IMG/VR virus record: IMGVR_UViG_3300020172_001601
Coordinates: 186,001-250,000 of that record
Direction: 5' to 3' (one strand)
Length of the DNA: 64,000 nt
Shown here: positions 7,446 to 63,433 of the stretch, piece after piece
Position numbering within the stretch: the first letter of the stretch is position 1
Layout of the letters: each line of letters begins with the position of its first letter
Program-made: the position numbers and the translations under genes
The notes under the pieces: model-generated
Database searches by the model: none
The model's input: the letters and a program-made list of their open reading frames with translations, nothing else
What the model was told of the DNA's origin: nothing

Positions 7446-7865
7446 TTATTGTTTAATTGTATTGTATTCTTTGTCTAACAGGATGGCATATTTTAACCAA
7501 TCCGGTGGGAGCAAAACATAACCTTGTGGAGATATTGAACCAGGAGTTTCGTCTTCCGGCAGAATGCCAGATTCTTTTGCTATTGAGCCGATCATAAGAC
7601 GTGCCTTTTGATCTCGCACCAGATACTCACTGCTGCCAGGAATTGGCGCTACAAACTTGGCTCCATATCCAATGAGCTTGTTCCAGTCGAACCCACCTTT
7701 TGGATAGAACTCAAACCGCATGTCGATCATGCCAACTTGTTGTCCAGGTACGCAAGGTAGCTCAAGTCCAGCAGCAATAAGCGCCGGACATGGTATGGTC
7801 ATGTCACCACTTACAGAGAAGTGGGGCATCTCGTCTAATCGTAGCCAATTCTTAAACTTCATCAT
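7446..7865 (-). CDS. hypothetical protein with capsid-targeting-like N-terminus (MMKFKNWLRLDE)
   Basis: ORF plus CTAAATA 5 nt upstream on minus strand. Confidence 0.75.
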   Translation of the reverse strand: MMKFKNWLRLDEMPHFSVSGDMTIPCPALIAAGLELPCVPGQQVGMIDMRFEFYPKGGFDWNKLIGYGAKFVAPIPGSSEYLVRDQKARLMIGSIAKESGILPEDETPGSISPQGYVLLPPDWLKYAILLDKEYNTIKQ

Positions 7866-7870
7866 GCGGT

Positions 7871-7877
7871 TATTTAG
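7871..7877 (-). promoter_or_regulatory. class III (late-type) motif CTAAATA
   Basis: 5 nt before ATG 7865, no SD. Confidence 0.65.
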
Positions 7878-7896
7878 GGTTTTTGAATTGAAATGT

Positions 7897-7903
7897 CTAA
7901 ATA
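7897..7903 (+). promoter_or_regulatory. class III (late-type) motif CTAAATA, divergent partner
   Basis: Upstream of small ORF 7937. Confidence 0.5.
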
Positions 7904-7936
7904 ATAGTCCAACCCTAAACAGGAGAAAGGTGGTTA

Positions 7937-8116
7937 ATGCAAAAAGGTTCAGTTAATAGTCCCATCCGTATAGATTTATCCGAAAAAGCACCGGATGAGA
8001 TAGCTGAATATCTGCAAGCCCTCCTTGCTATCCGCTATGCCCTGCACAAAAAGGGCCTCAAATTGAAAATTGACCGCCGCCCACGGCCCGCCAAGGTCAA
8101 AATTACTCCCGCTTGA
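7937..8116 (+). CDS. small basic protein, 59 aa (below track cut-off)
   Basis: AGGAGAAAGG SD; MQKGSVNSPIRIDLSEKAPDEIAEYLQALLAIRYALHKKGLKLKIDRRPRPAKVKITPA*. Confidence 0.65.
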   Translation: MQKGSVNSPIRIDLSEKAPDEIAEYLQALLAIRYALHKKGLKLKIDRRPRPAKVKITPA

Positions 8117-8133
8117 GTTTTTCAAAATCGCAT

Positions 8134-8161
8134 TGAACCAAAGCGATTTTCGCTCTCTAGG
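8134..8161 (+). promoter_or_regulatory. class II motif
   Basis: TGAACC-N13-CTCTCTAGG. Confidence 0.6.
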
Positions 8162-8201
8162 TTTGTGAACACTCTTTTCACAACTCACCGAGAGGTCCAT
8201 C

Positions 8202-8525
8202 ATGTCTACTGATCGTTCCGTTCCAGACGGCGGTATTAAGGTTGGTCAAGGTGCCACTTATGGCATCGGCAGCGACCGCTACCCGTATACCGTCATTGAA
8301 GTCTCAAGCCCAACTCGTGTTGTGGTTCAGGCCGACAATTATCGGCGAACCGACAATAATGGGTTCTCCGAGTCTCAGACCTACGAATACACCCCTAACC
8401 CGGATGCTTGCCAAACCATCGTGACTCGTCGTAAAGACGGTCGCTGGCGAAAGAAGGGCGATACCAAGGGTGGCGGCGTATTTTCGTTCCACGGTCGAAA
8501 TGCCTACCAAGACCCCAGCTTCTAG
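8202..8525 (+). CDS. phage hypothetical protein (ends YQDPSF)
   Basis: GAGAGG SD, 107 aa. Confidence 0.8.
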   Translation: MSTDRSVPDGGIKVGQGATYGIGSDRYPYTVIEVSSPTRVVVQADNYRRTDNNGFSESQTYEYTPNPDACQTIVTRRKDGRWRKKGDTKGGGVFSFHGRNAYQDPSF

Positions 8526-8542
8526 TCAATTTGGAAAATACC

Positions 8543-8588
8543 AGAGAGGCGACGTGAACTAAACTCACGTTCGCCTCTCTTGGTTTTT
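8543..8588 (+). terminator. hairpin plus T-tract overlapping a class II motif
   Basis: AGAGAGGCGA..TCGCCTCTCT stem then TGGTTTTT. Confidence 0.55.
8555..8583 (+). promoter_or_regulatory. class II motif
   Basis: TGAACT-N14-CTCTCTTGG. Confidence 0.7.
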
Positions 8589-8621
8589 GTGGACAGCACA
8601 ATACTCCAAAAAGGCAATACC

Positions 8622-9248
8622 ATGTCGAATGTAACGAAACAATTCGTTCTTGCGGGTCGTTCGATCTTCACTATTGAAATCCCCGAAGGCTACCGAGCCG
8701 AACATAATCTCAAGCCACACTACACTTTCCGAGTGGACCATAAGGCCCCGGAAGGCAAGTGGAAGGAAACGTGGTTCGTCAAGTACCTTACCGGGTCTGA
8801 CAATACTCGTGACTACTCCTATCTCGGCCTATTGAATGTCGAGAACGGACAGGTTCGGACTACTGCCAAGAGCAAGTTGAACGACAACAATCTTGTTGTG
8901 AAATTGCTCAATCGCACCTTGGCTCTTATTTGGGCCGGTGATGTAAACCCCATGACCGAAAAGGGGTTCGGGCTTCACCATGAGGGTCGATGTGGCAAGT
9001 GTGGTCGGGTATTGACCACGCCAGAAAGCGTTCAGCGAGGCATTGGTCCAGAATGCTGGATCAATATGAATGGTGGGCATTATCCTCATTTAGCTGTCAA
9101 AGGCGAATTTGAGGATCAGGCCCGCCAGGAAATGGAAGCCGAAGATCGTGAAGAACAACGGGCTGAAGACGGTGAATATGAGGCCGATATTGCCGAGCGT
9201 GAGGCCGTTCGGAATGCTTACTTGCATCTTTCTAACGGAACCGTGTGA
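8622..9248 (+). CDS. DUF6011-domain phage protein
   Basis: GRCGKCGRVLTTPESVQRGIGPEC. Confidence 0.75.
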   Translation: MSNVTKQFVLAGRSIFTIEIPEGYRAEHNLKPHYTFRVDHKAPEGKWKETWFVKYLTGSDNTRDYSYLGLLNVENGQVRTTAKSKLNDNNLVVKLLNRTLALIWAGDVNPMTEKGFGLHHEGRCGKCGRVLTTPESVQRGIGPECWINMNGGHYPHLAVKGEFEDQARQEMEAEDREEQRAEDGEYEADIAEREAVRNAYLHLSNGTV

Positions 9249-9817
9249 TGGACGAAGACGAATTCATCTTTGGATATGACAACGACAATCCTTATTATGC
9301 CATTCATGATTATGCTCGAAGGAATGGCTACGGCAAGTATAAGCGTCCGGTCATTCGCAGTGAAGACGCTGTTCTTGAAACCTACACGAATTGGAATTCG
9401 CCACAGGCCGATAAAGAGCGAACCATCTTCGGCGACAAGGAAGCCGATCTGTTCTACAACTATTCAGATCGCCTAGCTCAATGGGACTACGACAAGGATC
9501 GCCGGGCCAATGAATATGCAGCGTTAGTGGCACAGCCAAAAACCGCTAAGTATTTCACTGCCATGTTGTCGTATTTTCACGACGGGGCTGAAGTATCTCT
9601 CCGGCATATTGTTGCTGGCTGCAATCGCTCAAATGGTTTTCCGTATTTGGTTTACGGATACAAGTATACGACAAAGCCAGAAGATGCTGGTCGCCTTGCT
9701 GAATACGACAAGATTCGGCTGGGCAGGACCGCAGCACTGGAACAGGCAAAAACAGAATTCACTGCCAAGTTCGATGAAGCGATGGCAGACGTTTTGAAAA
9801 ATACCAATTCGGCTTGA
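9245..9817 (+). CDS. hypothetical protein
   Basis: GTGA-coupled 190-aa ORF. Confidence 0.75.
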   Translation: MMDEDEFIFGYDNDNPYYAIHDYARRNGYGKYKRPVIRSEDAVLETYTNWNSPQADKERTIFGDKEADLFYNYSDRLAQWDYDKDRRANEYAALVAQPKTAKYFTAMLSYFHDGAEVSLRHIVAGCNRSNGFPYLVYGYKYTTKPEDAGRLAEYDKIRLGRTAALEQAKTEFTAKFDEAMADVLKNTNSA

Positions 9818-9843
9818 ACCAATAGCGTATTTGGTTCTCTAGG
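9815..9843 (+). promoter_or_regulatory. class II motif
   Basis: TGAACC-N14-TTCTCTAGG. Confidence 0.65.
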
Positions 9844-9887
9844 TGTCTGTAACGAACTTAACCCCTTCAGTTTCTCGGAGAATGGTC

Positions 9888-11015
9888 ATGTCGCAGCGAG
9901 TTGTCAATTACACGGCTGGTGAAAAGGTTGAAGAATTGGTGGCTCTTGGCGATATTACCGTCAGCCACAATCCTCGTGCTTCTCTTCGTGGTGTTCTCGA
10001 TCTCTTCCACAGCGACGGTAGTGCGAGCCAGTCGCCGGAAACTCGGCAGGCATTCGTCTCGTATATGAAGGAAGAACACCCGGAAATTGACGGCCTTCGT
10101 CATTCCATCGAAGAACACGGTCTGCTTCAGCCGCCAGTGGTTCGTGCCTTCCGTGCCAAGCAGGATGGTGAATATGTCCAACGCTATGGCATCGTATTGG
10201 GCGAAGGGCGTATTCTTTCTTACGCTCTGACCGAAGCGATTACCGGCGTGGCTCAAAAGGTTCGTGTCCGTATTGAATCTCGTCTCGGCGTCGATGCCGC
10301 TTTCGAGCAGGGTTTGGCCGAAAACCTTGACCGCAACGACATGAACCCCGTCGATCTGGCGACGGCATTCCACGAGATGTTGACAATCCGCATCAATCCG
10401 GCTACAAAGTCCCCCGAAGTAAATGGGGAACCCAACCCGCTGTATTCTTCTGACAGCCCGAAGGGTCGCCCATATACGCTCAAGGAACTGGCCGAACGTG
10501 TCAATAAGACATATTGGTGGGTTCGGGATCACGAAGCGATTTCGTACCTCCCGGATAACCTGAAGTCACAGTGTATCAAGTCGTGGCAGTCGGGCAAGCG
10601 CAATGTCACCCGGTTCTGCAAGTTGGGATTGAAGTACAAGGCTCAGGTCACGGGACAGCCGGAAGAAACCGGGCTTGACAGCCAGACTGGAACAAACGAT
10701 ACTGTTGTCGCAAATGACGGAACCACGACGCAACTTGTCGGAACTTCGTCGGAAACAACCCAGGTTACGCAGCTTACCGCTGCCGTGGAAACTTCGATTT
10801 CCCTCGAACCTGCACAACGTCGTCGTGTCCTTAGTCTGAAGTCGGTGGTGGGACTGTTCGACGGAACGGCATTGGAAAACAAGGAGCGGCTGGCAACGCT
10901 GGCTGAAGTGATGGGAATCACGCTTGAAGAAGCACTGACCGAACGAGATTTACGTCTCGCTAATCAGGCCGATACCCAGGCTCGCAAGCAGCAGCGACAA
11001 CTGGCAACTGCTTGA
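9888..11015 (+). CDS. ParB/RepB/Spo0J family protein
   Basis: NPRA, LRHSIEEHGLLQPPVVR, GEGR, AENLDRNDMNPVD, HTH YTLKELAERVNKT; GGAG SD 7 nt before ATG 9888. Confidence 0.8.
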   Translation: MSQRVVNYTAGEKVEELVALGDITVSHNPRASLRGVLDLFHSDGSASQSPETRQAFVSYMKEEHPEIDGLRHSIEEHGLLQPPVVRAFRAKQDGEYVQRYGIVLGEGRILSYALTEAITGVAQKVRVRIESRLGVDAAFEQGLAENLDRNDMNPVDLATAFHEMLTIRINPATKSPEVNGEPNPLYSSDSPKGRPYTLKELAERVNKTYWWVRDHEAISYLPDNLKSQCIKSWQSGKRNVTRFCKLGLKYKAQVTGQPEETGLDSQTGTNDTVVANDGTTTQLVGTSSETTQVTQLTAAVETSISLEPAQRRRVLSLKSVVGLFDGTALENKERLATLAEVMGITLEEALTERDLRLANQADTQARKQQRQLATA

Positions 11016-11033
11016 AATAAACCAAGAGAGCGC

Positions 11034-11062
11034 TGAACCAAACGGCATCGGCGCTCTCTTGG
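11034..11062 (+). promoter_or_regulatory. class II motif inside a 14-bp perfect inverted repeat (11020-11064), upstream of sigma gene
   Basis: AACCAAGAGAGCGC-TGAACC...-GCGCTCTCTTGGTT. Confidence 0.75.
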
Positions 11063-11089
11063 TTCATAGGATGACCGAACTTAATCAGG

Positions 11090-12145
11090 ATGAATCCCCA
11101 ACCGTCAAAGGAGAAGATCGTGGACTTTCAAGAAATTCCTTACGTCAAGTTGTCAGGTGGCCAGAAGAAGAAAGCCCTCGAAATTCTTGGTCGTGGAAAC
11201 GTCCTCTTGAAGAAGTGGGCTGCGTTCTTCCCACCGAAGAAGTATCGCCTGTTTCGCAACGCAGTGATGGAAGGCAGCACGAACCCTCAGCACGATGGCA
11301 AGGCGGCGATCCCGTCCAATATGCTGAAAGAGTTCCACTCGGACTTACCGTTCATGACGGCGATCCGTCACAACAAATACGATGATCTCGACGGTCGTTC
11401 TGTCGAACAGGCGATCCTCGAAGGGTTCAGCGCTCTCGCCAAACGGCACGCCCGCAAGTGGTCACTCGAAGGTGATCCGGTCGGATTGACCAAGCAAGAC
11501 TTCCTACAGGAAGCCTACATGCAGGTCATCGAAGCGATGTACTCGTGGATGCCCGAACACAATGTCGATATTTCGACGTTCATTTGGGTGTCGTTGAAGA
11601 ACCGGATGAGCAATGTCGTCAACCAACAGGGCAATATGCTCTGTCCGTTGACCAACTCCGACTTGGAGTTGATGAGCCGATTCGAGCAGACGAAGCGTGG
11701 TATGCCACAGTATGTCACGTTCGATCAGATCATCAACCAACTTGGGTTGTCGGCTGAAGAAGGGAAGCATCTGAATACGCTGTTGACTCGTGTATTCGCC
11801 GAGAATCAGTTGGGTGGTCAACAGGGCGATCAGCACGACGATATGAGCGCCACGGGCAACGATTACACCGGGCATCGTGTTGGTGTGGATCGTGAGTCGG
11901 AAACCGAAACCGTTCTGCAAGAGCAGCACGTCTTCGATACTCTGAGCCGGGCTGGACTGTCGGTACTGGAACGACAAGTGATTGAAGCGGCGATGGAACC
12001 ATTCCACGGATGGCAGACTGAATTCGCCAAGACACACATCAATCCGGCTACCAACAAGCCATACTCACGAATGAGAATCACACAGGTTCTCGAAATGGCA
12101 CGAGAAAAGGTCGCAAAGACCTTAGAGCGACAAGAAGCGGCCTAA
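11090..12145 (+). CDS. sigma70-family RNA polymerase sigma factor
   Basis: Region 2-like DFLQEAYMQVIEAMYSW..ISTFIWVSLKNRM; region 4-like LSVLERQVI..YSRMRITQVLEMAREKV; alternative GTG start 11120 with AAGGAG SD. Confidence 0.85.
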   Translation: MNPQPSKEKIVDFQEIPYVKLSGGQKKKALEILGRGNVLLKKWAAFFPPKKYRLFRNAVMEGSTNPQHDGKAAIPSNMLKEFHSDLPFMTAIRHNKYDDLDGRSVEQAILEGFSALAKRHARKWSLEGDPVGLTKQDFLQEAYMQVIEAMYSWMPEHNVDISTFIWVSLKNRMSNVVNQQGNMLCPLTNSDLELMSRFEQTKRGMPQYVTFDQIINQLGLSAEEGKHLNTLLTRVFAENQLGGQQGDQHDDMSATGNDYTGHRVGVDRESETETVLQEQHVFDTLSRAGLSVLERQVIEAAMEPFHGWQTEFAKTHINPATNKPYSRMRITQVLEMAREKVAKTLERQEAA

Positions 12146-12164
12146 CCGATGATGGGTCAAAGAG

Positions 12165-12193
12165 AAAGCCGGGGATAAAACCCCGGCTTTTTT
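12165..12193 (+). terminator. intrinsic terminator
   Basis: AAAGCCGGGG-ATAAAA-CCCCGGCTTT TTT. Confidence 0.9.
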
Positions 12194-12202
12194 ATTGCGC
12201 CG

Positions 12203-12231
12203 TGAACTAAAGAGAGGTTTGACTCTCTAGG
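12203..12231 (+). promoter_or_regulatory. class II motif, likely leaderless mRNA
   Basis: TGAACT-N14-CTCTCTAGG, ATG 5 nt later. Confidence 0.7.
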
Positions 12232-12236
12232 ATTTT

Positions 12237-12929
12237 ATGAACTACCAAATCATCACCGACGAAGCCAAGCTGGACGAATTCATCAGCTTCCTGCCCGATA
12301 TTGAAGACACAGAGGTTTACTACCTCTGTCTATTCGGTCGGCACAAGTATGCTGCTGAGTTTCCCAATACAAAAGACAGTGGGCAACTGGCTCGTATTGC
12401 TTCTCGTAAGAGTGATCTCAAAGAGAAGATTCGTCGGCTGGAATCCCCGCTGGGTTCTTTCTCACGGGACGGTGCTGTGGCTCCGCAGGAAGCATTGGCT
12501 GTCTATATCGGCCTGAACCCCAGGTCGCTTATTCAGGCCAATAAGAAGCTATTGGTTGAATTGGCGACTCGTATTGCCGAAGGCGATCTGAGTTTCAATC
12601 CGATCTCTGCCGCAACCACCGAAATTCATCGTGCCGTTTCTCGTAAGTTCTTTGTGGACTTCGACTACGATCATGTTGAGCCTGCTGATTATCTTCCCAA
12701 AATCAAGGAAATTCTGCCTGCCGGGGCTTATAAAGTCCTGAAAACACGGGGCGGTTTTCACCTGATTATTGAATTGGCGAAGATGAATAAGCCTCTCAAG
12801 AAGGATTGGCATAAGCTATTGGCTTCTCTGCCAAATTGTGATGTTCGAGGGTCTAAGAATCTGACCCCGGTTCCCGGATGTACACAGGGAGGTTTCACGC
12901 CGTATTTTGTCGCCTTGAACCAAGAGTGA
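12237..12929 (+). CDS. hypothetical protein with AEP primase-like motifs
   Basis: FFVDFDYD (hhhDhD) and KTRGGFHL (sxH-type) motifs. Confidence 0.45.
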   Translation: MNYQIITDEAKLDEFISFLPDIEDTEVYYLCLFGRHKYAAEFPNTKDSGQLARIASRKSDLKEKIRRLESPLGSFSRDGAVAPQEALAVYIGLNPRSLIQANKKLLVELATRIAEGDLSFNPISAATTEIHRAVSRKFFVDFDYDHVEPADYLPKIKEILPAGAYKVLKTRGGFHLIIELAKMNKPLKKDWHKLLASLPNCDVRGSKNLTPVPGCTQGGFTPYFVALNQE

Positions 12930-12944
12930 ACTTCGCTCTCTTGG
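12916..12944 (+). promoter_or_regulatory. class II motif
   Basis: TGAACC-N14-CTCTCTTGG in CCAAGAG/CTCTTGG stem. Confidence 0.65.
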
Positions 12945-12945
12945 C

Positions 12946-12952
12946 CTATATA
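12946..12952 (+). promoter_or_regulatory. class III (late-type) motif CTATATA
   Basis: 5 nt before ATG 12958. Confidence 0.6.
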
Positions 12953-12957
12953 CCAAC

Positions 12958-13596
12958 ATGATGACCTTCAAGGAATTTTTAATGGCCGACACCGTAAACC
13001 TTCGGGAAGTTGCCCTGTTTGACTCGCCGTCTTTGTTCAAGGAAATGGCCGTTCTGAACCAGAACGCTATTGCCAAGACTCAGACGGCGATGCAATTCAT
13101 TCATAACAACAATATCCCCGGTGTCATTATCGGCGGTATTGCCGTCGCCAACTATACCCATGACCGGGCGCTGACCCCGGACGTGGATTTTTTGACGCCC
13201 AATATCGCTGGTTTGAAGACCCTGCTACAACAGCAGAATATTCCTTTCCAGCCATTAGCTTCCAGTGGTGAGTTTGGTGGTATCTATGTTCCGTCGCTCG
13301 ATGCCGACTTCTTGGACGTGTCCGAGGGCAATGTCGGATTGAACCGTTATATCATGCAGACCGCTACGACTGCCAAAATTGGTGGCGTGTCTTTCCCGAT
13401 TATTGACGCAGCAGTATTGACCATCATGAAGTTCATTATCGGTCGTGACAAAGATCAGACTGATGCCTTCAAACTGCTGCCTACTGTGCCGAAGGCGACT
13501 CTCAAGACTCACCTGAAGGCGTTGGGTCGATACTTGCCGGAAGACATGAATGCACAAACGATCTGGAGCTATGCCAAGGCAATGTCTCCAGGTTAA
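12958..13596 (+). CDS. nucleotidyltransferase (Pol-beta fold) with capsid-targeting-like N-terminus MMTFKEFL
   Basis: VIIGGIAV..RALTPDVDFL and K..GRDKDQTD motifs. Confidence 0.75.
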   Translation: MMTFKEFLMADTVNLREVALFDSPSLFKEMAVLNQNAIAKTQTAMQFIHNNNIPGVIIGGIAVANYTHDRALTPDVDFLTPNIAGLKTLLQQQNIPFQPLASSGEFGGIYVPSLDADFLDVSEGNVGLNRYIMQTATTAKIGGVSFPIIDAAVLTIMKFIIGRDKDQTDAFKLLPTVPKATLKTHLKALGRYLPEDMNAQTIWSYAKAMSPG

Positions 13597-13597
13597 T

Positions 13598-13626
13598 TTT
13601 ACAGTTCCCTTATTCTGTGGTAAAAT
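13598..13626 (+). promoter_or_regulatory. class I promoter
   Basis: TTTACA-N17-TAAAAT. Confidence 0.75.
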
Positions 13627-13646
13627 CCCAAATAAGGGGCATTGCG

Positions 13647-19705: not shown

Positions 19706-20149
19706 ATGGCAGCTACAGACAAAAAGACGCTTGAACTGATTGCTCAGGTCAAGGCAAAGAAGGCGGCAATCGCCAAGGCCGAGAAGCCTGCATACAAGAC
19801 CAACCTATCTTTTTCCTACATTGAAGGGAACAAGAGCAGCGCAACCAATCTGAACATCGAAACCGATGTAAGGAAGTTGATCTGTATTGCAGCTTTTCTC
19901 ACCGAACGCAGTGCCACCTACTCGATGGTCGCCACCAAGGTATTGGGCGTTGACAAGCCGCCTGAGTTTACCTGGGATGGCTACACGGTGGACGATTGGA
20001 TCGGCGATCTGAAGTTGAAGATTACGAAAATCCAAATCGTCGCCGAAAAGAAGAAGCTGGAAGCGTTGGAAGAACGCCTCAACAAGATTATCAGCCCTGA
20101 AAAACGTGCTGAACTCGAACTTGAGGCCATTGCCAACGAGTTGGGATAA
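19706..20149 (+). CDS. phage hypothetical coiled-coil protein
   Basis: 147-aa ORF directly after previous gene. Confidence 0.75.
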   Translation: MAATDKKTLELIAQVKAKKAAIAKAEKPAYKTNLSFSYIEGNKSSATNLNIETDVRKLICIAAFLTERSATYSMVATKVLGVDKPPEFTWDGYTVDDWIGDLKLKITKIQIVAEKKKLEALEERLNKIISPEKRAELELEAIANELG

Positions 20150-20166
20150 TTTTCCCAATTCTCACG

Positions 20167-20173
20167 CTAAATA
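20167..20173 (+). promoter_or_regulatory. class III (late-type) motif CTAAATA
   Basis: 5 nt before ATG 20179. Confidence 0.65.
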
Positions 20174-20178: not shown

Positions 20179-21531
20179 ATGAGATTTAGTTTCCGCAAAT
20201 GGCTAGAAGCCGAAGATAACCCACAAATCCAGTGGCGTAATGATGTTCCCACCTACCATCGAGGTTTGGTTCGGGCAAATCAATTACGCCCTGGATTTGT
20301 GCATGTATATGATCCTGACCACTATAACTTGGGTGGCCGAAAGGTATTTCATGATGAACACGGCGAAGTCGGATATTCTCTATTGCCGCAAGAAGGCCCT
20401 TTACAAACACCAGAGAATCCAGGTAAGATAGAAATAGCTGGGGTGTACAACCACGGTGGGGATCGAACAAAAGGCTGGGGAGTTCATGCCATCAAGCACG
20501 CCGTCCAACAAGGCGGCAATTACTTAGAAGCCTTTGAGGGCAATGAACGATTTTCTCTGCCTTTGTATTATCATGCCCACTTAGGAGTTGAGCCAATTGG
20601 CTATTTGCCTTGGGATAATCAATATGCCCCAGCGGGTTGGAATGCCGAAAGAGACAATGAGCCAGGGATTGTCCAGATGCAAATCCCGCCAGAAGGATTG
20701 GCTGATTTAGACACTTGGCTAAGTACAAGGCATGATGACGATCAAGCTCTGTTTATGGCCAAACTAAAACGATTGAAGCAACAAGCAGGTGTTCAAATGG
20801 ACGAAAACAAAAAGCGTGGTGGTCATGATGCTAAAAAGCATAGGGACCATTGTGCATCTCCAGAGGAATACAAGCGATTGGTCGATGGAGTTGACGAATT
20901 CTATTTCGGTTCTGGCGATGACACACCTATGCCTGATCCAGACGACAAGATTGGCCGCTTCATTCATATGAAGGCCCATGAATGGAACGTCGGCATCACC
21001 GAGGCTGCTGAACGCTCTATGGCTCGTCTTTATGGGCAAATTGCCAAGAACGACAAGACCGTGATTATTCTCACTGCATTCCGGCACGAGAATGACCTGA
21101 AGACCAATCGTCAACTGAATGTATCCTTGGGTGCCGACCTTCGTAAGTTGGGCTGGGGATATACACCAGTCATGGGTGGTTTTGTCGAGAAGGGCGAAGG
21201 CGGCAAAGACGTTCACGTTCAAGAAGAATCTATGTTCGTCAATGCAACTGGCGATCCAGGACAGGTTGTATCCACGATTCATAAGCTGTTACAGAAATAT
21301 CAGCAGCAGGCCGCATTGGTTAAGCTGCCTGATGATCCTGTAGCTGTATTGCTTTGGGATGATGGGCATACCACTCCAGCCGGTCAATGGCACGCTGACC
21401 CTCAGCAAATGGCCCAATACTACACTCAGATGAGAAGTGGCCCTCCGGGTCGTCAATTCAAGTTCGAGGCCGCAGGCGACGATTCAGTGATGACTCGCAT
21501 GGCAGTCGAGAACTACTTCAAATCGCTCTAA
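20179..21531 (+). CDS. capsid-targeting-like N-terminus (MRFSFRKWLEAE), GNAT-like domain and DUF3293-like C-domain
   Basis: GVYN..KGWGVHAI..GGNYLEAF..YY..G; ILTAFR..N..L..GYTPVMGGFVE..EESMFV; domain calls tentative. Confidence 0.6.
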   Translation: MRFSFRKWLEAEDNPQIQWRNDVPTYHRGLVRANQLRPGFVHVYDPDHYNLGGRKVFHDEHGEVGYSLLPQEGPLQTPENPGKIEIAGVYNHGGDRTKGWGVHAIKHAVQQGGNYLEAFEGNERFSLPLYYHAHLGVEPIGYLPWDNQYAPAGWNAERDNEPGIVQMQIPPEGLADLDTWLSTRHDDDQALFMAKLKRLKQQAGVQMDENKKRGGHDAKKHRDHCASPEEYKRLVDGVDEFYFGSGDDTPMPDPDDKIGRFIHMKAHEWNVGITEAAERSMARLYGQIAKNDKTVIILTAFRHENDLKTNRQLNVSLGADLRKLGWGYTPVMGGFVEKGEGGKDVHVQEESMFVNATGDPGQVVSTIHKLLQKYQQQAALVKLPDDPVAVLLWDDGHTTPAGQWHADPQQMAQYYTQMRSGPPGRQFKFEAAGDDSVMTRMAVENYFKSL

Positions 21532-43993: not shown

Positions 43994-44021
43994 GGCCAGT
44001 GATGAAAGTCGCTGGCCTTTT
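43994..44021 (+). terminator. intrinsic terminator
   Basis: GGCCAGTGA-TGAAAG-TCGCTGGCC TTTT. Confidence 0.7.
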
Positions 44022-44028
44022 CTATATA
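44022..44028 (+). promoter_or_regulatory. class III (late-type) motif CTATATA
   Basis: 5 nt before ATG 44034. Confidence 0.6.
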
Positions 44029-56096: not shown

Positions 56097-56107
56097 GGTA
56101 CTAATCC

Positions 56108-56632: not shown

Positions 56633-56635
56633 CCT

Positions 56636-56664: not shown

Positions 56665-56682
56665 TATTCAGGAGATCAAATC

Positions 56683-57063
56683 ATGTGTGGAATACGAGGC
56701 ATCTGTGATGAGTGCGGAATAGAGTGCGATTCCGTCACTGTGGACGAAGGAATCGGCCCCTATGAGTATTGGGGCAGTCGTGGTGTTCATCACGATTACG
56801 TCGAACGCTCGCCATGCTGTCATGCTGAAGTCGTTGAAGGTGGAAACTCACTGGTTCGGATCAGCGACCATACTGCTCGCCGTGACCATAAGCGTGGCGG
56901 CATCAAGAAGGGTGATCGTTATCGAGTTGTTGTTACTCGATGCTGGCGTCGGCATGGGCCACACTGGATTAGCACCCGCAAGATCAAGAGCAATACGCCT
57001 GCTCCGGTGTTTGGGAAATTCAAATTCCTGAAAGGGGCGCAAAGTGAAGGTCAAGTGGGATAA
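56683..57063 (+). CDS. Cys-containing hypothetical protein
   Basis: AGGAG SD; CDEC..PCC. Confidence 0.7.
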   Translation: MCGIRGICDECGIECDSVTVDEGIGPYEYWGSRGVHHDYVERSPCCHAEVVEGGNSLVRISDHTARRDHKRGGIKKGDRYRVVVTRCWRRHGPHWISTRKIKSNTPAPVFGKFKFLKGAQSEGQVG

Positions 57064-57098
57064 ACAAACTCCAACCAAAACAGAAAAGGAACCTGAAC

Positions 57099-57512
57099 AT
57101 GCCTTGCCGATCTGATTACATGGAACCCAATGCACGAGAAATCGAAAGCAAGCGGGTTTGTCAATTGCTCAAGTATCTTTTCGCTGCCGCCAATATCCCG
57201 GCCACCGCTCAGGTGATCGGGCGAGTTGAACAAGGCGCAAAGGAATTCTACGGCAACCCCGACAGCCTCGATGCCGACACCGACCTGCTTTGCCAGTTGC
57301 TACGGACACTTCCAGATGACACGGCGGCGACAGTCGTGTATGATGGTCGTAATCCCGAAGCACGCAAGCTCGCCGATTGGTGGGATCATCACCAAGCCGC
57401 TGACACCGAGCGTGAGGCCGAGGAAGAACACCGTCGCAACAATGAAGTTCTTCGGCAGCAAGCACTCAGCAAGCTGACGCCCGAAGAAATCGCCGCCTTG
57501 AGAATTAAGTAG
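57099..57512 (+). CDS. phage hypothetical protein (MPCRSDY start)
   Basis: AAGGA SD. Confidence 0.75.
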   Translation: MPCRSDYMEPNAREIESKRVCQLLKYLFAAANIPATAQVIGRVEQGAKEFYGNPDSLDADTDLLCQLLRTLPDDTAATVVYDGRNPEARKLADWWDHHQAADTEREAEEEHRRNNEVLRQQALSKLTPEEIAALRIK

Positions 57513-57523
57513 GATCGAGTCAG

Positions 57524-57916
57524 ATGTTCGCTCACGATTTTGCCAGAATAGTTGATGTTTTAACATTCAACACCAATTCTGGACATGACTTTTATATCGC
57601 CACCGTCCAGACCAATGAGGGCGAGCTATACTTGGCTCGCCAAGCTGGGTCTACTCGGTGGAATAAAAGGCTGGCCGATGCCTTGGTGGGCGGCGGGTAT
57701 TTCATCGGAGAGCGATACGCAAGGCAATGTGCCGATGAAATGTGTGGCATTTACAAAGATTTTCAGCCCGAACAAGTGGTTGTAAAGCAACTGGATATTG
57801 ATGATGCAGTGTCTCAATTGAACGCTGCATTTCAACAGGCCGTGTCAGAAATGGCAAAGGCCAAAGAGTTATCCAAGTCACAGAAGAGAACTTACCAATA
57901 TGACACTGGTAATTGA
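57524..57916 (+). CDS. hypothetical protein
   Basis: Packed ORF. Confidence 0.65.
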   Translation: MFAHDFARIVDVLTFNTNSGHDFYIATVQTNEGELYLARQAGSTRWNKRLADALVGGGYFIGERYARQCADEMCGIYKDFQPEQVVVKQLDIDDAVSQLNAAFQQAVSEMAKAKELSKSQKRTYQYDTGN

Positions 57917-58313
57917 CAAAAAAGGCCAACTATGGCAAATCGACAGGCGGGGTCACTATGTTATACATCGTGACCCCGCCCCTGCCGATGCAGTGGTTAT
58001 ACGGGCCGATTTCGAGGATGGCTTCACCGCCACTGCGGAAGAATATGCAACAGCTTTTGGCATAAGGAATTATAACATGCGTGTTTCAGCACAAACAACA
58101 ACATACGAACTGACAGTCACCGAACTCAAGAGCCTAATGGCAAAAGAATTGAATGTTGGTGAAGACAAAATCAACATTCGATTCTTGACTCGTGAGGTTG
58201 GCGACGACCGTTTTGGCCCAACCAGCCAAGAAACCTACGCTCTCGAAGTTATCGTGAGTGGACCCAAAGCAAATAACAATCCACATGACCTTATCAGTGG
58301 ACAGCCTAGATGA
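57900..58313 (+). CDS. hypothetical protein
   Basis: Packed ORF. Confidence 0.65.
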   Translation: MTLVIDKKGQLWQIDRRGHYVIHRDPAPADAVVIRADFEDGFTATAEEYATAFGIRNYNMRVSAQTTTYELTVTELKSLMAKELNVGEDKINIRFLTREVGDDRFGPTSQETYALEVIVSGPKANNNPHDLISGQPR

Positions 58314-58738
58314 TGACACCGCCATGCCCCATATGCAGTGAATATGTAAATGGTGGCATGACGCTCGTGCGTCACCTATGCAATAACCACGGACTCACTA
58401 CTGAAAAGGCCAACGATGTAGTTGATGATCTGTATGCGAAGATCAACGACAAAAGGAGAATAGGCGTGCCACCTGCTGCCCCACGAGAATTCACTGTGAT
58501 GTACGAACACCTGACTGGCGATCAATGCGAAGCATTGAAAGAACGAGTCAGGGACAAAGAGAAGGAATTCACCTGGGGAACCTATGGTCCTGACCGGGAT
58601 GAAGACCTTCAGAAGTACACCATCGACAAACTGTCTTCGCAGCACTTGGAAAACATCCTAATCACCCAGCCACAAATCCCCAATGAATTGGCGGCTGCAA
58701 TCCTCATGCTTTTGAAGAAACGATACGGGGCCTTATGA
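58310..58738 (+). CDS. hypothetical protein, N-terminal C2H2-like
   Basis: CPIC..HL..H; ATGA-coupled. Confidence 0.7.
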   Translation: MMTPPCPICSEYVNGGMTLVRHLCNNHGLTTEKANDVVDDLYAKINDKRRIGVPPAAPREFTVMYEHLTGDQCEALKERVRDKEKEFTWGTYGPDRDEDLQKYTIDKLSSQHLENILITQPQIPNELAAAILMLLKKRYGAL

Positions 58739-58875
58739 GAAAGAATACATCAGCCTTCGCAGGTTTCCTAATCATTTGGGGCTGCTGTATGATTGGCGCA
58801 CACACCAAATGGCAATTGGGACTCGCATCGTTCTTCGTGGCATCTGGTGTTGCATTTTACGCAAGAGAAAAATGA
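58735..58875 (+). CDS. 46-aa membrane peptide (not in track)
   Basis: ATGA overlaps at both ends; MRKNTSAFAGFLIIWGCCMIGAHTKWQLGLASFFVASGVAFYAREK*. Confidence 0.6.
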   Translation: MRKNTSAFAGFLIIWGCCMIGAHTKWQLGLASFFVASGVAFYAREK

Positions 58876-59153
58876 AAAAGAAAAAGAAACGTAAGGAATT
58901 CAAACGTGGCACGGTTGTCGTGTTTGAGCCAAAGAACTTCAACCCGGAGTATTGGGACAAACTCTCCGAGGAAGATCGAGTCAAATACTATGGCGCTCTC
59001 GGCTATGGCAGCAAGAAGCCCAAGTTCTTTGTCTATTTGACTAAGATCAGAAACGCTCCCGGTCATTGTGTACTCGTCTCGCTCGATGACCAGACAATCG
59101 AAACCATGAGACATGACAGTGACTTCAGAGAAGTGGAAGAGGATGAGTTCTAA
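58872..59153 (+). CDS. hypothetical protein
   Basis: ATGA-coupled start replaces track start 58776. Confidence 0.65.
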   Translation: MKKKKKRKEFKRGTVVVFEPKNFNPEYWDKLSEEDRVKYYGALGYGSKKPKFFVYLTKIRNAPGHCVLVSLDDQTIETMRHDSDFREVEEDEF

Positions 59154-59422
59154 TGAATAACTTTTGGGATTATCACGGCTGGCTGTTCATCTTGGCAATG
59201 TTCTTTTTTCCAAGACTCACCATGCTTTTCGCCACCACGGTCGGCGGTGGCTTTCTGTATTGGCTTGGCTGGCTGCTTGCCCCTCGACTGACTGTGGCCA
59301 TCCTCGCCACCATCCTGTTCCATGAACACAATACAGTGTTGCTGATCTTCACATGGATATGGGCCTTGGGCGGCGAAACCACCGAGAAGACCGTGATTCG
59401 ATCCAAAACCTCTTCGAGCTAA
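59153..59422 (+). CDS. small multi-TM membrane protein
   Basis: Three hydrophobic segments. Confidence 0.7.
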   Translation: MNNFWDYHGWLFILAMFFFPRLTMLFATTVGGGFLYWLGWLLAPRLTVAILATILFHEHNTVLLIFTWIWALGGETTEKTVIRSKTSSS

Positions 59423-59428
59423 ACAAGT

Positions 59429-59457
59429 TTTACAACGGCCTGTATTTGGGGTATAAT
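59429..59457 (+). promoter_or_regulatory. class I promoter of smpB, near-leaderless
   Basis: TTTACA-N17-TATAAT, ATG 8 nt later. Confidence 0.8.
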
Positions 59458-59465
59458 CACTCACT

Positions 59466-59906
59466 ATGAGCAATAATCAGGTCGTATGCCAGAACCGCAA
59501 AGCCCGTTTCGAGTACGAAGTTCTCGAAACGCTTGAAGCCGGTATTGTCCTTAAAGGGACTGAAATCAAATCGGTGAGACAACACCACGTCTCGCTCGAT
59601 GGTGCATTTGCCGTCGTTGCCAATGGCGAAGTCACGTTGGTAAATTGCAATATCGAACCATACAAACAGGGCAACGTCCACAACCACGAACCCAAGCGAC
59701 AACGACGACTGCTCCTGAACAAGTCCGAGATCGCCAAGTTCGCTGAGAAGGCCAAAGTCAAAGGGTTCACCCTCGTTCCCCTGTCCATGTACATCAAGAA
59801 TGGCAAGGCCAAGGTCGAACTGGCTGTATGCCGTGGCAAGCAAATTCACGACAAGCGACAGTCCATCAAGGACCGTGATCTTTCAAGGGAACTGAGGCAG
59901 CAATGA
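59466..59906 (+). CDS. smpB: SsrA(tmRNA)-binding protein SmpB
   Basis: QNRKARFEY..EAGIVLKGTEIKSVR..NHEPKR.RRLLL..GFTLVPL..KAKVELA..GKQ.HDKR. Confidence 0.97.
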   Translation: MSNNQVVCQNRKARFEYEVLETLEAGIVLKGTEIKSVRQHHVSLDGAFAVVANGEVTLVNCNIEPYKQGNVHNHEPKRQRRLLLNKSEIAKFAEKAKVKGFTLVPLSMYIKNGKAKVELAVCRGKQIHDKRQSIKDRDLSRELRQQ

Positions 59907-60172
59907 GTGAAGTAAAGTGTGTAAAAATTCGTGATATGGCGATTCTCGTTGACCGAGACATAGAGCCAGTAGGCAACAAATTGATTATCACTGGTTCTTA
60001 CTTTTGCTTTACGATAGACAATGTAAAAGCAAATGAAATTATTCGTTTGGGAAAATACCTTCAACAAGAAGGATTGAAACTCGCCGACGAGGGTGATTTG
60101 CCCGACGAACTTGAAGATGATGATGAGGAAGATTTGCCCGACGAACTTGAAGATGATGAGGAAGACGAATGA
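59903..60172 (+). CDS. hypothetical protein with duplicated acidic tail
   Basis: ATGA-coupled to smpB. Confidence 0.65.
   Translation: MSEVKCVKIRDMAILVDRDIEPVGNKLIITGSYFCFTIDNVKANEIIRLGKYLQQEGLKLADEGDLPDELEDDDEEDLPDELEDDEEDE
60095..60163 (+). repeat. tandem duplication, 36 nt plus 33 nt (DLPDELEDDDEE / DLPDELEDDEE)
   Basis: GATTTGCCCGACGAACTTGAAGATGATGA repeated exactly. Confidence 0.9.
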
Positions 60173-60414
60173 CATTCAAATTTGAAGTTGGACAAGAATA
60201 CCAAACTCAAGCTGGTGAAACCGTCAAGGTTCTCGGAAGAACGGACAACCCTGGATATGAATGCTTGATTTGTAGTGACAATAAGCATCGCTACGATAGG
60301 TCAACGCATTCTGATGACGCTGGACGAGTCACCGGAACCGATCACGATTATTCATGTCCAGATAACTTCGTGAGACAAGCAAATGAACAAGCGGGAAGCG
60401 TTCAAGCAAGCTAA
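60169..60414 (+). CDS. hypothetical protein
   Basis: ATGA-coupled. Confidence 0.65.
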   Translation: MTFKFEVGQEYQTQAGETVKVLGRTDNPGYECLICSDNKHRYDRSTHSDDAGRVTGTDHDYSCPDNFVRQANEQAGSVQAS

Positions 60415-60598
60415 GGCCATCTATCCTGGCCTGAAGCCCACAAGAGCGAGTGGTTTCACCCTGACCCAAGATGGTCAGGGTGTTATCGTTGCGGGATACG
60501 ATGAAGATGTAGTGATGGTCTTGCACAACGAGACTGACATATACAGACTCATGAATATGTGCCAGTTGGCTATTGAACGCAGAAAGAAAAAGAAATGA
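60383..60598 (+). CDS. hypothetical protein
   Basis: Packed ORF. Confidence 0.6.
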   Translation: MNKREAFKQAKAIYPGLKPTRASGFTLTQDGQGVIVAGYDEDVVMVLHNETDIYRLMNMCQLAIERRKKKK

Positions 60599-61317
60599 CA
60601 TTCATATTCTCGCCAGCAACACAAGCCGACTTGGTGATCGCTGAGTTGCCCTTTGAAGACACACTGTCGCAAATCACCAACGAAGACAATTATGTTGACA
60701 TTGATATTGCCGGGAAAGCATATCCTGTCAATATGGGTGCGTCACGGCTACGCATCATCAAGAAAAGCCCTGTTTGCGCCTGCTGTGGCATCCGAGCAAC
60801 TGAATGCTCCCTCGATCTTGATGCCCAATCCACCAAAGAAGCTGGCGAACTCCGCTATCACGTCAATTTCTATGCTGCCACCGGGGTCAAGGATCATGAC
60901 CACCAACATATGATCCTGTTCACCAGGGACCATATTGTTCCGAAGTTCAAAGGCGGCGATGAATCTGAAGAGAATTCACAAACTCTCTGCTTCAATTGCA
61001 ATTGCCTCAAAGACTCCACCGAAATGGACTTGGAACACATGAGGAAGGCCCTCTTCCCGGCCTACCGTGCCTACCAATCGTCCAAAGCCCTGAATCTCGC
61101 CAAAGATCGTCTGCACATGCACTACGTTCGTTTGGAAAAGGCCAATAGAGCCGTCGAGAACATCACACAGGCCCTCACTATTGTCACCGACCACCGGGCC
61201 GAAGGCTTAAAAGACAAGCGGGACAAGAGTGCAGAAACAGCGACGAAGTTGCTCTCTTATATTGAACAAGTTGAACGTCAATCCCAACTCAATGGTGTTG
61301 TTCCAAAGGTAGAATGA
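60595..61317 (+). CDS. HNH endonuclease-domain protein (same family as 4169..5107)
   Basis: CACC..LFTRDHIVPKFKGGDESEENSQTLCFNCNCLK. Confidence 0.8.
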   Translation: MTFIFSPATQADLVIAELPFEDTLSQITNEDNYVDIDIAGKAYPVNMGASRLRIIKKSPVCACCGIRATECSLDLDAQSTKEAGELRYHVNFYAATGVKDHDHQHMILFTRDHIVPKFKGGDESEENSQTLCFNCNCLKDSTEMDLEHMRKALFPAYRAYQSSKALNLAKDRLHMHYVRLEKANRAVENITQALTIVTDHRAEGLKDKRDKSAETATKLLSYIEQVERQSQLNGVVPKVE

Positions 61318-61667
61318 AAATGAATACAATTGACAGAACAAAAAAATTATTGTTAGTTCTTTGGAACGGCAATTATGACCATGCCTTTATTTGCAGTGAC
61401 AAAGTTGGATATTATGACAAGGGCGACCGTCATGAAAAAGAAATTGCAAAACATCTAAGCAAACCCGGCACTCAAGTTGTATTTCTGTCAGACAATACAG
61501 AGCATGATGACACCGAAATCATCTTTGATGAGTATTTGCCCAATATCATTGAAGGGAAAAATTCCCCAGATGATTATGGTTTTGAAGTCACATCGGTCTT
61601 CAATACACTTGGCGAATGGGCTGGAGAAGACGAAGACGAAGACGAAGACGAGGAACTTGACGAATGA
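61314..61667 (+). CDS. hypothetical protein, (ED)n tail
   Basis: ATGA-coupled. Confidence 0.65.
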   Translation: MKMNTIDRTKKLLLVLWNGNYDHAFICSDKVGYYDKGDRHEKEIAKHLSKPGTQVVFLSDNTEHDDTEIIFDEYLPNIIEGKNSPDDYGFEVTSVFNTLGEWAGEDEDEDEDEELDE

Positions 61668-61975
61668 TCGTATTAGAAGGTGGACAATATCGCAAGTTTA
61701 AGAGCAAAAAGCCTAAACTATGCGATTGCACGGTCGGTGTTGACCCTAATAGCCACCAACCACACCTGCTGAGATGTAAGAATGTGGCTCAGTATCTTTG
61801 GTTCTCTAGGCACTGGTTCCTGGAAATCACCAAAGAATCTACTGAGCCTATTTTCTTTAACATTCCAGCAATAGTCTGCGAATCTTGCCTCGAACGGCTC
61901 AAATTGACCAAACCGCCCAGCGACCTAGACAAATACCGGGAACTGCATAAAAAGAACAAAAGTGCGGCTAAATAA
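61664..61975 (+). CDS. hypothetical protein
   Basis: ATGA-coupled. Confidence 0.6.
   Translation: MIVLEGGQYRKFKSKKPKLCDCTVGVDPNSHQPHLLRCKNVAQYLWFSRHWFLEITKESTEPIFFNIPAIVCESCLERLKLTKPPSDLDKYRELHKKNKSAAK
61968..61974 (+). promoter_or_regulatory. class III (late-type) motif CTAAATA
   Basis: 4 nt before ATG 61979. Confidence 0.65.
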
Positions 61976-61978
61976 AGC

Positions 61979-63433
61979 ATGTTGAAGTTCAAGACATGGC
62001 TAGAAGCCGAACAACCAGTAACAAACCCTGCCGCCCCAATCCAGAAAGGCGTCGGATACTACCTGCGCCTTGCCGGACTACCCCAAGGTGTCGCCAAACA
62101 CCCTGATGCCTATAAACTCATTGAGCAGGCATACAAGCAACTCCAAGCCCAAGGCAATCCAGAAGCCCATGAAGCCTATATCCGACTGCACGGCTATCTC
62201 GATAGACAACAGGGCGGCAAACACTTCAATAACTTCTTTACGGACGTAACACAAGGCAAAGAAGCATACGTTCCACACTCTGAGTTCCAGCCAGTCCTTG
62301 ATATGTCACAACAACAAGACTGGATGAAAACAAGAGAACAATACCACGGCAACTTCGACAAGCATATCAAAACCAGCATCCCTACGTTCGGAGAACTACA
62401 GGATAAGAAAGGCCATGCAATATCGACTGCCTTCAAAGACCAAGAACTCGATATGCTCGATATTGGTGGCTCTGAAGGATCATTCGCCCGCACCATCAGC
62501 CATATGACTAATGGTCAAATAAAGACTGAAGTGCTGGACCCTAACGATGCCATGCACGACTTCTACCACAGCAAGGGACAAACCCCAGGCAGCACATATA
62601 ACAAAGCCGCTTTCATGAAGGGCTGGATCAATGACGATGGCTCGAAAACGCCCGAACTCAATAGCGAGACAACAGATAAACGATATGATATTATCCACGA
62701 GTCTATGGCATTCCAGTTCATGAGCAACCAACGTGATGCCCAAGTCGCCGAGGCCAAGGCATTACTCAAGCCAACTGGCATGTTCCTCACCGAACAAAAG
62801 CTAAAGAACGATAATTGGGACGCCAATGAGAAGTTCAAAGACGAAAACCACAAGAACCTCTATTACAGCAATGAGGCACTGAAACAAAAAGAAAAGGTTG
62901 TCGCCTTCGCTGCGGAAAAGAAGCCACAGTTTGCTCAAAATCAAGACGAAGAAGAAGCAGTCGGCATGGTGAATAACATGGTTCACCACAATGAATACGA
63001 ACAAACCCTTGCCAAACACTTCCAAATCGTGTATCAGTATTGGGATAGCGGGAACTTCAAAGGCTACGCAGCCAGCGATCAACCCGATATGGTCACAAAG
63101 TTCCTGCACGCATTGGGCAACGTCAGTAGTAAATTCTCAAACGTCCCGCTCCCAAGAAGAATAACGGTCGGAGAATCCATCATGCCATCCTTCAAAGAAT
63201 GGTCGAAACAACACAGCATCGAAGACGTGACCAACGGCATCCTCCCGCACCGGGACAAGCTGGAGAAAATGACCGGCCATGAGATCAAGAAGCTGTACGG
63301 GGATAAACTCGTACACGCCGCTCGTAAACTCGATATGGACCTCAGCGACGACGATATTGATGAAATCATCGACAAGGCATGTGGAATCGAAGAAATCGAG
63401 CCGCACCACAGCCACTACCATCTGCACACTTAA
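61979..63433 (+). CDS. class I SAM-dependent methyltransferase (CmoA-like) with capsid-targeting-like N-terminus MLKFKTWLEAE
   Basis: FDKHIKTSIPTF, MLDIGGSEG, EVLDPN, YDII, LLKPTGMFL..K, QYWDSGNF. Confidence 0.7.
   Translation: MLKFKTWLEAEQPVTNPAAPIQKGVGYYLRLAGLPQGVAKHPDAYKLIEQAYKQLQAQGNPEAHEAYIRLHGYLDRQQGGKHFNNFFTDVTQGKEAYVPHSEFQPVLDMSQQQDWMKTREQYHGNFDKHIKTSIPTFGELQDKKGHAISTAFKDQELDMLDIGGSEGSFARTISHMTNGQIKTEVLDPNDAMHDFYHSKGQTPGSTYNKAAFMKGWINDDGSKTPELNSETTDKRYDIIHESMAFQFMSNQRDAQVAEAKALLKPTGMFLTEQKLKNDNWDANEKFKDENHKNLYYSNEALKQKEKVVAFAAEKKPQFAQNQDEEEAVGMVNNMVHHNEYEQTLAKHFQIVYQYWDSGNFKGYAASDQPDMVTKFLHALGNVSSKFSNVPLPRRITVGESIMPSFKEWSKQHSIEDVTNGILPHRDKLEKMTGHEIKKLYGDKLVHAARKLDMDLSDDDIDEIIDKACGIEEIEPHHSHYHLHT

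Follow-up and report, generated by a model that had tools for sequence, protein, structure and literature searches.

Five genes scattered over a 64,000-nucleotide stretch of phage DNA (hereafter, the window) open with variants of one short peptide, and each of them starts 4 or 5 nucleotides (nt) after the heptamer CTA(A/T)ATA. We interpret the peptide as a T4-derived capsid-targeting propeptide that has probably spread to dozens of genes in a clade of phages with genomes of about 0.5 Mb, usually expressed from a leaderless late-promoter cassette; we put the probability of this reading at roughly 0.6. The window comprises bases 186,001–250,000 of the 340,341-bp IMG/VR virus record IMGVR_UViG_3300020172_001601, which has 47.8% G+C, came from a freshwater metagenome, and is 69% complete by CheckV estimate. 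The record sequence recurs, as DNA only, in freshwater and sediment metagenomes, and the record appears to be part of an uncultured freshwater phage genome of roughly half a megabase. Window proteins and boxes are given below in window coordinates, and genome-wide positions in record coordinates. The coordinates, strands, N-termini, and upstream CTA(A/T)ATA of the five genes are as an earlier, sequence-only reading of the window had described them: the N-termini fit the pattern M-x(1–4)-F-(K/R)-x-(W/F)-(L/I)...E, the spacers between heptamer and ATG measure 5, 5, 5, 5, and 4 nt, and no Shine–Dalgarno (SD)-like 4-mer is present at positions −18 to −5 in any of these genes.

How would such a system operate? 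A cassette would consist of a gp55-type late box (C/T-T-A-N-A-T-A), sometimes preceded by a terminator hairpin, with transcription starting at or beside the A of the ATG; the leaderless mRNA would have the tag as its first codons. Tagged proteins would be made late, taken up by the scaffolding core as the prohead assembles, and trimmed by a gp21-family prohead protease after a Glu located 8–17 residues from the start. The trimmed proteins would remain inside the head and pass into the cell together with the DNA. We infer the timing, transcription start, cleavage, packaging, and injection from sequence patterns.

How closely does the peptide resemble its presumed T4 counterparts? In T4, capsid-targeting sequences direct internal proteins to the scaffolding core, after which gp21 cleaves these sequences off (PMC3012670, PMC5694885); the internal proteins IPI, IPII, IPIII, and Alt all bear one (Mullaney and Black 1996, as cited in PMC5694885). 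In the T4 sequence itself, ipII and ipIII start with MKTYQEFIAE and ipI with MKTFKEF, and the match to T4 targeting sequences that had been proposed for the window genes holds up in this comparison. Near matches include MMTFKEFLMAD in the window, as well as MKTFNQWLE, MKTFAEWIVE, and MKTFSEWLEA in LR756511.1 (hereafter, LR756511), an unannotated 595-kb uncultured phage that is the nearest GenBank record. The tag consensus, M-(L/M/K)-(T/N/S)-F-(K/R)-(E/Q/D)-(W/F)-(L/I/V)-E-x-x-E, describes a short N-terminal peptide of the MKT(F/Y)(K/Q)EF(I/L)xE type, and it stands on otherwise unrelated proteins (mean column identity of the cargo, 5%). Codons vary synonymously at the conserved residues (TTC/TTT, AAA/AAG, GAA/GAG, and six Leu/Ile codons), and the tag is also found on SD-led genes; selection therefore acts on the peptide and not on the RNA, and the peptide is more than a side effect of leaderless starts.

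The tag also has the layout that a removable propeptide would have. In 87% of tags, a Glu lies 0–3 residues after the aliphatic position, where the protease site would be: of the 46 tags from the record and LR756511, 40 have their first Glu in this interval, as do 53 of the 61 IMG/VR tags, in which these positions were left unconstrained by the search. Homologues of the 212- and 450-amino acid (aa) window proteins keep the tag down to about 45% identity, with divergence in the residues that follow it, and in the 212-aa family the tag is followed by an indel-rich linker of variable length, beyond which come a conserved VNL-x-E/D and the globular domain. In AlphaFold2 models, the predicted local distance difference test (pLDDT) score is 59 for residues 1–10 of the 212-aa protein, compared with 92 overall, and it is below 50 for residues 1–16 of the 450-aa protein. 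Both models thus portray the tag as a short, low-confidence helix detached from a well-modelled body.

Is the pairing of box and peptide coincidental? The 340-kb genome contains 8 instances of CTAWATA-N5-ATG and 0 of its reversed control. There are 39 CTAWATA heptamers on both strands together; about 24 lie within 60 nt 5′ of an open reading frame (ORF) in the sense orientation, 13 of these at exactly 4–5 nt. When all ATGs opening at least 60 codons are considered, the box-by-peptide table (8/5/32/2975) gives an odds ratio of 149 (Fisher P = 5.6e-13), and chance pairing is excluded. A scan of all possible starts for M-x(0–6)-F-(K/R/N/S/T)-x-(W/F/Y)-(L/I/M/V) followed by an acidic residue recovered 16–17 tagged genes in the record, a larger set than the five first noticed. 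They are scattered over the genome, and most begin 4–5 nt after a late-promoter-type box. Orthologue comparison with LR756511 suggests a few more genes with degenerate tags near the tail module.

Box and peptide are nevertheless separable. For five tagged genes there is no box within 30 nt (four of these genes have an SD-like site), and in three further tagged genes an SD lies between the ATG and a box 10–18 nt or more upstream. Four tagged genes on the minus strand (258–263.5 kb) form an operon-like run in which only the first has a box, and two of the three later genes carry an SD-like site. Conversely, at least four genes have a box at 4–5 nt and no tag (one of them heads the tail module), and the box is not bound to the peptide in the window either, because it precedes an untagged 207-aa gene there (Table 1). 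The sequence-only reading had spoken of one promoter-plus-peptide code; the two are indeed tightly linked, but a single code is too strict a description, as promoter and peptide also occur apart. The genome otherwise uses SD sites: of the 381 genes that are at least 100 aa long, 203 (53%) have an SD-like 4-mer at −18 to −5, versus 87 of 381 random 14-mers (23%). Genes of the 4–5-nt cassettes lack such a 4-mer, with the sole exception of a variant-box gene at 303679 (GGGAAGG upstream of the box). A gene cluster adjoining the tail module (genome positions 303679–311000) has full or degenerate tags and is kept in both the record and LR756511, in contrast to the tagged window genes, which are not conserved; one product of the cluster is a 538-aa enzyme whose head domain is of the PolyA_pol/CCA-adding type.

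What kind of element is the box? CTAAATA is the published late-promoter box of Aeromonas phage Aeh1, in which it starts at −12 (Nolan et al. 2006, PMC1524935), and the proposal that the window heptamers are late promoters agrees with this identity. A gp55-dependent late promoter of the T4 type has a TATAAATA-like box centred near −10 and lacks a −35 element; CTA(A/T)ATA coincides with the Aeh1 form of this box. With the box starting at −12 and its final A at −6, a 5-nt spacer would therefore place the predicted +1 on the A of the ATG. CTAWATA is among the most enriched upstream 7-mers, in the sense orientation. In other genes it lies 18–53 nt from the ATG, often with an SD in between, and it precedes tail-module genes at 311.8, 312.4, and 338.4 kb. 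This behavior fits a promoter rather than a ribosome site, and the tagged cassettes would then give rise to leaderless late mRNAs. Several cassettes are preceded by strong terminator-like hairpins.

A second upstream motif of about 26 nt (TAGGTCCAGTGTACCCTAGTGGGTGT) is present in about 60 copies, nearly all on the plus strand, between genome positions 265000 and 293100; a copy precedes almost every small gene of this 265–293-kb block, and none is found on the tagged genes. We read this motif as a putative separate promoter class, possibly early, in which case at least two classes would exist. Neither a multisubunit nor a T7-like phage RNA polymerase that might serve it was found in the record or in LR756511, which seems to use AAGCTGTACT in place of TAGGTCCAGTGTACCCTAGTGGGTGT.

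How widespread is the tag beyond this record? LR756511, whose baseplate wedge protein is 46% identical to that of the record, has 111 proteins in common with it in partly collinear order. It contains 30–45 tagged genes, with tags such as MLTFTEWLETN, MKTFNQWLESVE, MKTFAEWIVE, and MKTFKDWMQLKE. The box in LR756511 takes the looser form (C/T/A)TA-N-ATA, and box and peptide are again associated (odds ratio 32, P = 9e-18). The five tagged window genes, which have no homologue in LR756511, are therefore part of a variable region. Scanning IMG/VR for an exact pattern (box, 4–5 nt, ATG, 1–3 codons, F-K-x-W-aliphatic) returned 89 stretches; among the distinct matches the ATG is in frame with F-K in 72 and out of frame in 6 (3:4 expected by chance). 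The tag-bearing contigs range from 4 to 572 kb, and the CheckV sizes of large ones imply genomes of about 0.5 Mb. Among the cultured phages compared, five T4-like phages (Aeh1, Syn9, S-PM2, P-SSM2, and HTVC008M) have no leaderless tagged genes, and in the four jumbo phages closest by capsid protein (XacN1, Mel-JY01, Xoo-sp13, and RAS14) the tag pattern does not exceed its reversed control.

Database annotations conceal some of the tags. Two homologues of the 212-aa protein looked tagless, and the DNA 5′ of their called starts encodes MRKFKEYCM... and MNFKEYLM..., preceded by the boxes ATAGATA-N5 and TTAAATA-N4, respectively. To judge from this upstream DNA, the apparently tagless versions are artefacts of gene callers that skipped the leaderless start. 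Because the public calls begin at an internal Met in both entries checked, at least some tagged genes are truncated in databases. A 9.7-kb contig with a tagged MenT-like gene additionally codes for a protein combining ArdC-N and MPTase-PolyVal and for a ParB_N protein (L203 4076–4939). Proteins of these kinds are typical of transfer with incoming DNA.

Do these phages possess the machinery that a T4-type tag would require? LR756511 has a head module on one strand and in T4 order, consisting of the portal gene, a gene for a 616-aa protein, an S77/gp21-type protease gene (E 6.7e-28; LR756511 positions 525953–526621, minus strand), a gene for a 310-aa, coiled-coil, scaffold-like protein, and a gp23-family capsid gene (E 5e-87); a second protease paralogue is also present. 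The first gene of this operon has CTATATA 44 nt upstream, and a 1076-aa tagged gene with CTAAATA-N4 directly follows the capsid gene. Two matches to phrog_234 (E 7.4e-8 and 1.8e-5) point to a gp55-like sigma factor, although these matches are weak and the control genomes also match the family. Protease and capsid genes stand side by side in 8 of 20 large tag-bearing IMG/VR contigs, one of which is a complete 572-kb genome with terminal repeats. The LR756511 portal protein (gene at L062 11014–13587, minus strand) contains an intein-like insertion that starts with CVAGDT and ends with VMHNC.

What do the tagged genes encode? The model of the 212-aa protein matches the MenT1 toxin fold (8an5_B, E 5.8e-7, TM-scores 0.58/0.66), and MenT enzymes modify tRNA. 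The 450-aa protein has a SAM-lyase-family domain (PF23780, E 6.8e-12), and its model matches GNATs and the T3 SAM lyase 8bb1. The GNAT part of this protein has a homologue in the C-terminal domain of a minor capsid protein encoded by gene 4 of Microbacterium phage Barnstormer, a gene located between those for portal and scaffold. PDB sequence searches with the 450- and 484-aa proteins came back empty. For the 139-aa protein no family or fold match was obtained, nor any domain or fold match for the 146-aa protein, and protein-atlas searches with both gave no usable match. Most of 72 tagged proteins from LR756511 and IMG/VR likewise have no Pfam match; the matches that do occur are to ART-PolyVal, Zeta-toxin/AAA_33 kinases, Peptidase_C39, ankyrin repeats, HAD_SAK_1 with tRNA-ligase CPD, and DnaJ. 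For the large tagged LR756511 proteins and the conserved tagged genes near the tail module, the PolyA_pol head domain is the only Pfam match.

By analogy, this cargo resembles known head-delivered effectors—an ADP-ribosyltransferase (as is T4 Alt), a GNAT, a SAM lyase, a MenT-like nucleotidyltransferase, and kinases. The mix of apparent takeover, counter-defence, and RNA-repair functions fits the T4 picture, in which diverse internal proteins have only the targeting sequence in common (PMC3012670). The suggestion that the window genes form a payload of enzymes and effectors can be kept in part: some of the cargo is of the takeover or counter-defence type, but two of the five window proteins have no recognizable function.

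The elements of the window are listed in Table 1. Terminator-like hairpins lie immediately 5′ of the box in three of the five tagged genes (43994–44017, 12920–12944, and 20140–20159), and stronger hairpins precede the tagged genes at genome positions 24141 and 26279. With these upstream hairpins, the tagged genes look like insulated, moron-like cassettes. Two of the genes have 16 identical nucleotides (20199–20214 and 61996–62011; ATGGCTAGAAGCCGAA) spanning W-L-E-A-E of the tag, which hints at recent recombination or copying between cassettes. A second CTAAATA on the plus strand (7897–7903) is divergent from the minus-strand box at 7871–7877, both within 33 nt of one intergenic region, and no called gene lies within 298 nt of the plus-strand copy.

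Table 1. Tagged genes, boxes, and flanking elements (window coordinates, except for the re-found starts in the last two rows)
Feature	Position	Strand	Remarks
CTAAATA box	5671..5677	+	7 nt before untagged 207-aa gene 5685–6308
Tagged gene, 139 aa	7446..7865	-	N-terminus MMKFKNWLRLDE; tag codons about 7830–7865
CTAAATA box	7871..7877	-	5 nt 5′ of ATG at 7865
Inverted repeat CCAAGAG...CTCTTGG	12920..12944	+	Immediately 5′ of box
CTATATA box	12946..12952	+	5 nt before ATG
Tagged gene, 212 aa	12958..13596	+	MMTFKEFLMAD, then conserved VNL-x-E/D; MenT1/DUF2204-like nucleotidyltransferase (predicted)
CTAAATA box	20167..20173	+	5 nt before ATG
Tagged gene, 450 aa	20179..21531	+	MRFSFRKWLEAE; GNAT-like domain about aa 41–191; SAM-lyase-family domain aa 296–419
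GC-rich hairpin then TTTT, terminator-like	43994..44017	+	Immediately 5′ of box
CTATATA box	44022..44028	+	5 nt before ATG
Tagged gene, 146 aa	44034..44474	+	N-terminus MPILKFKQWICES
CTAAATA box	61968..61974	+	4 nt before ATG; overlaps 3′ end of preceding gene
Tagged gene, 484 aa	61979..63433	+	MLKFKTWLEAE; class-I SAM methyltransferase domain aa about 110–350
Re-found start	L202 2960–3030		True start 8–9 codons upstream of called internal Met; TA-N-ATA box
Re-found start	L203 2960–3030		True start 8–9 codons upstream of called internal Met; TA-N-ATA box

Several observations weigh against a T4-type targeting tag. The Glu often stands right after W-L, giving aromatic-Leu-Glu as opposed to the canonical Leu/Ile-x-Glu of T4, and the internal-protein genes of T4 are themselves not leaderless. 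The closest cultured relatives lack the tag, and there is therefore no experimental precedent in the clade. The 538-aa CCA-adding-type enzyme and tagged proteins of more than 1000 aa are not obvious head cargo, and the gp55-like match in LR756511, to a family that the control genomes also match, is weak. Finally, a T4 prohead protease (PF03420, phrog_207), a full capsid gene (PF07068), and gp55 (phrog_234) were not found in the 340-kb record. Its only capsid match is an isolated 95-aa ORF (genome positions 124977–125141) among nonstructural genes, which covers only a segment matching about residues 70–125 of the LR756511 capsid protein. This segment is the counterpart of the T4 Gol peptide region, and the ORF may represent a decoy, a remnant, or a regulatory fragment. 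The head genes are presumably missing because the record is incomplete (69%) and its synteny with LR756511 is partial: its last mapped genes match LR756511 at about 555 kb, and the LR756511 head module is at 520–534 kb, which suggests that the head module lies beyond the end of the contig.

Could the peptide be addressed to something other than the prohead? It might be a signal for a phage chaperone, a protease degron, or an address for a replication or assembly compartment or the cell envelope, and late expression may hold in that case as well. The head genes missing from the record, the very heterogeneous cargo (which includes housekeeping-like enzymes), and the departure of the Glu from the canonical T4 position would all be compatible with such a role. 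We nonetheless regard it as unlikely. The tag is a near match to T4 targeting sequences and occurs in phages with T4 head-assembly genes; a tagged gene adjoins the head operon in LR756511; and the peptide is short and acidic, with neither a hydrophobic core nor a twin-arginine, and is thus unlike an export signal.

Markedly less probable is that box and first codons travel together by recombination as a mobile regulatory cassette, like the promoter-stem-loop cassettes of T4-type phages, with the peptide a functionless by-product. The 16 nt that are identical across the tag in two window genes, the hairpins that bracket several cassettes, and the placement of the window genes in a variable region speak for mobility of this kind. 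However, the amino acid pattern is kept despite synonymous codon variation, diverged orthologues from many contigs still carry the tag, which is also present on SD-led genes without a box, and the IMG/VR matches are overwhelmingly in frame. Least plausible of all, and in our view quite improbable, is that the N-terminal codons are a translation-initiation element for leaderless mRNA and the box a ribosome-loading or RNA-processing signal: the fixed spacing of 4–5 nt without an SD would suit it, but untagged leaderless-type genes and tagged SD-led genes both exist, the box also occurs at promoter-like distances of 18–53 nt, often with an intervening SD, T4 has the same peptide on SD-led genes, and synonymous sites show no nucleotide-level conservation. 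All three explanations are less well supported than a T4-type capsid-targeting tag.

How does the proposed targeting tag compare with systems already described? With the capsid-targeting sequences of T4 it shares an N-terminal peptide of 10–20 residues, of the pattern M-K-T-(F/Y)-(K/Q)-E-(F/W)-(I/L)-x-E, on unrelated proteins; a Glu at the would-be gp21 cut position; cargo of the counter-defence or takeover type (T4 Alt is an ADP-ribosyltransferase, and an ART-PolyVal protein is tagged here); and T4-type protease, scaffold, and capsid genes in relatives. The differences lie in scale and arrangement. T4 has four or five such proteins, with SD sites, whereas the phages considered here have at least 16–17 in 340 kb and 30–45 in the 595-kb relative, dispersed over the genome and mostly 4–5 nt after a late box without an SD. 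Trp is preferred at the second aromatic position here, the Glu often directly follows the aliphatic residue, and the system is known from sequence alone. The gp55-type late promoters of Aeh1 offer a second parallel, with the same heptamer (starting at −12 in Aeh1), a putative gp55-like gene in the relative, and boxes before structural genes. In contrast to Aeh1, which has no leaderless tagged genes, the box here is often so near the ATG that the mRNA would be leaderless, and in LR756511 its fourth base is free (TA-N-ATA).

Other phages deliver proteins from the head by different means. Giant phages of the phiKZ-like type, such as SPN3US, likewise deliver into the cell many head-internal proteins that a T4-related prohead protease has processed, with N-termini conserved among diverged paralogues, but their propeptides are mostly longer than 100 residues and their cleavage motif is A/S/G-x-E (PMC5694885); neither a common short tag nor a leaderless late cassette has been described for propeptides of this type. 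In MuF-type minor capsid proteins with C-terminal polymorphic effector domains, an enzyme domain is also delivered via the capsid, and the Barnstormer GNAT homologue illustrates the likeness; there, the effector is fused to a structural protein, whereas here it is free-standing with a short tag. In the literature searched, huge phages have not been linked with capsid-targeting sequences, nor gp55-type late promoters with leaderless genes, apart from the unrelated AR9 system. The concept is thus known from T4, while its scale, dispersal, leaderless coupling, and occurrence in huge phages appear to be undescribed in that literature.

What would this mean for the biology of huge phages? Nearly all that is known of these phages comes from metagenomes, and a role has been assigned to only a minority of their genes. 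We consider it about an even bet that a clade of freshwater and sediment phages with genomes of roughly 0.5 Mb uses the T4 tag as a genome-wide address label on dozens of dispersed, rapidly exchanged genes, most of them in leaderless late cassettes. The starts re-found in the two database entries checked expose a systematic annotation error, in which an internal Met is called in place of a leaderless start, and the cassettes themselves suggest a class of late, leaderless phage mRNAs. The targeting principle of T4, already in use as a protein-packaging tool, would be extended to a far larger capsid and cargo set. If the tag does mark head-loaded, injected proteins, then the injected proteome of uncultured giants—hidden in current annotations because gene callers cut leaderless starts—would become readable from sequence; it would include a MenT-like nucleotidyltransferase, a GNAT and SAM-lyase fusion, methyltransferases, ADP-ribosyltransferases, and kinases. 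The tag would also flag new effector families among the many tagged proteins of no known function and would permit a sequence-only listing of the first-strike arsenal with which these phages may counter defence and take over the host.

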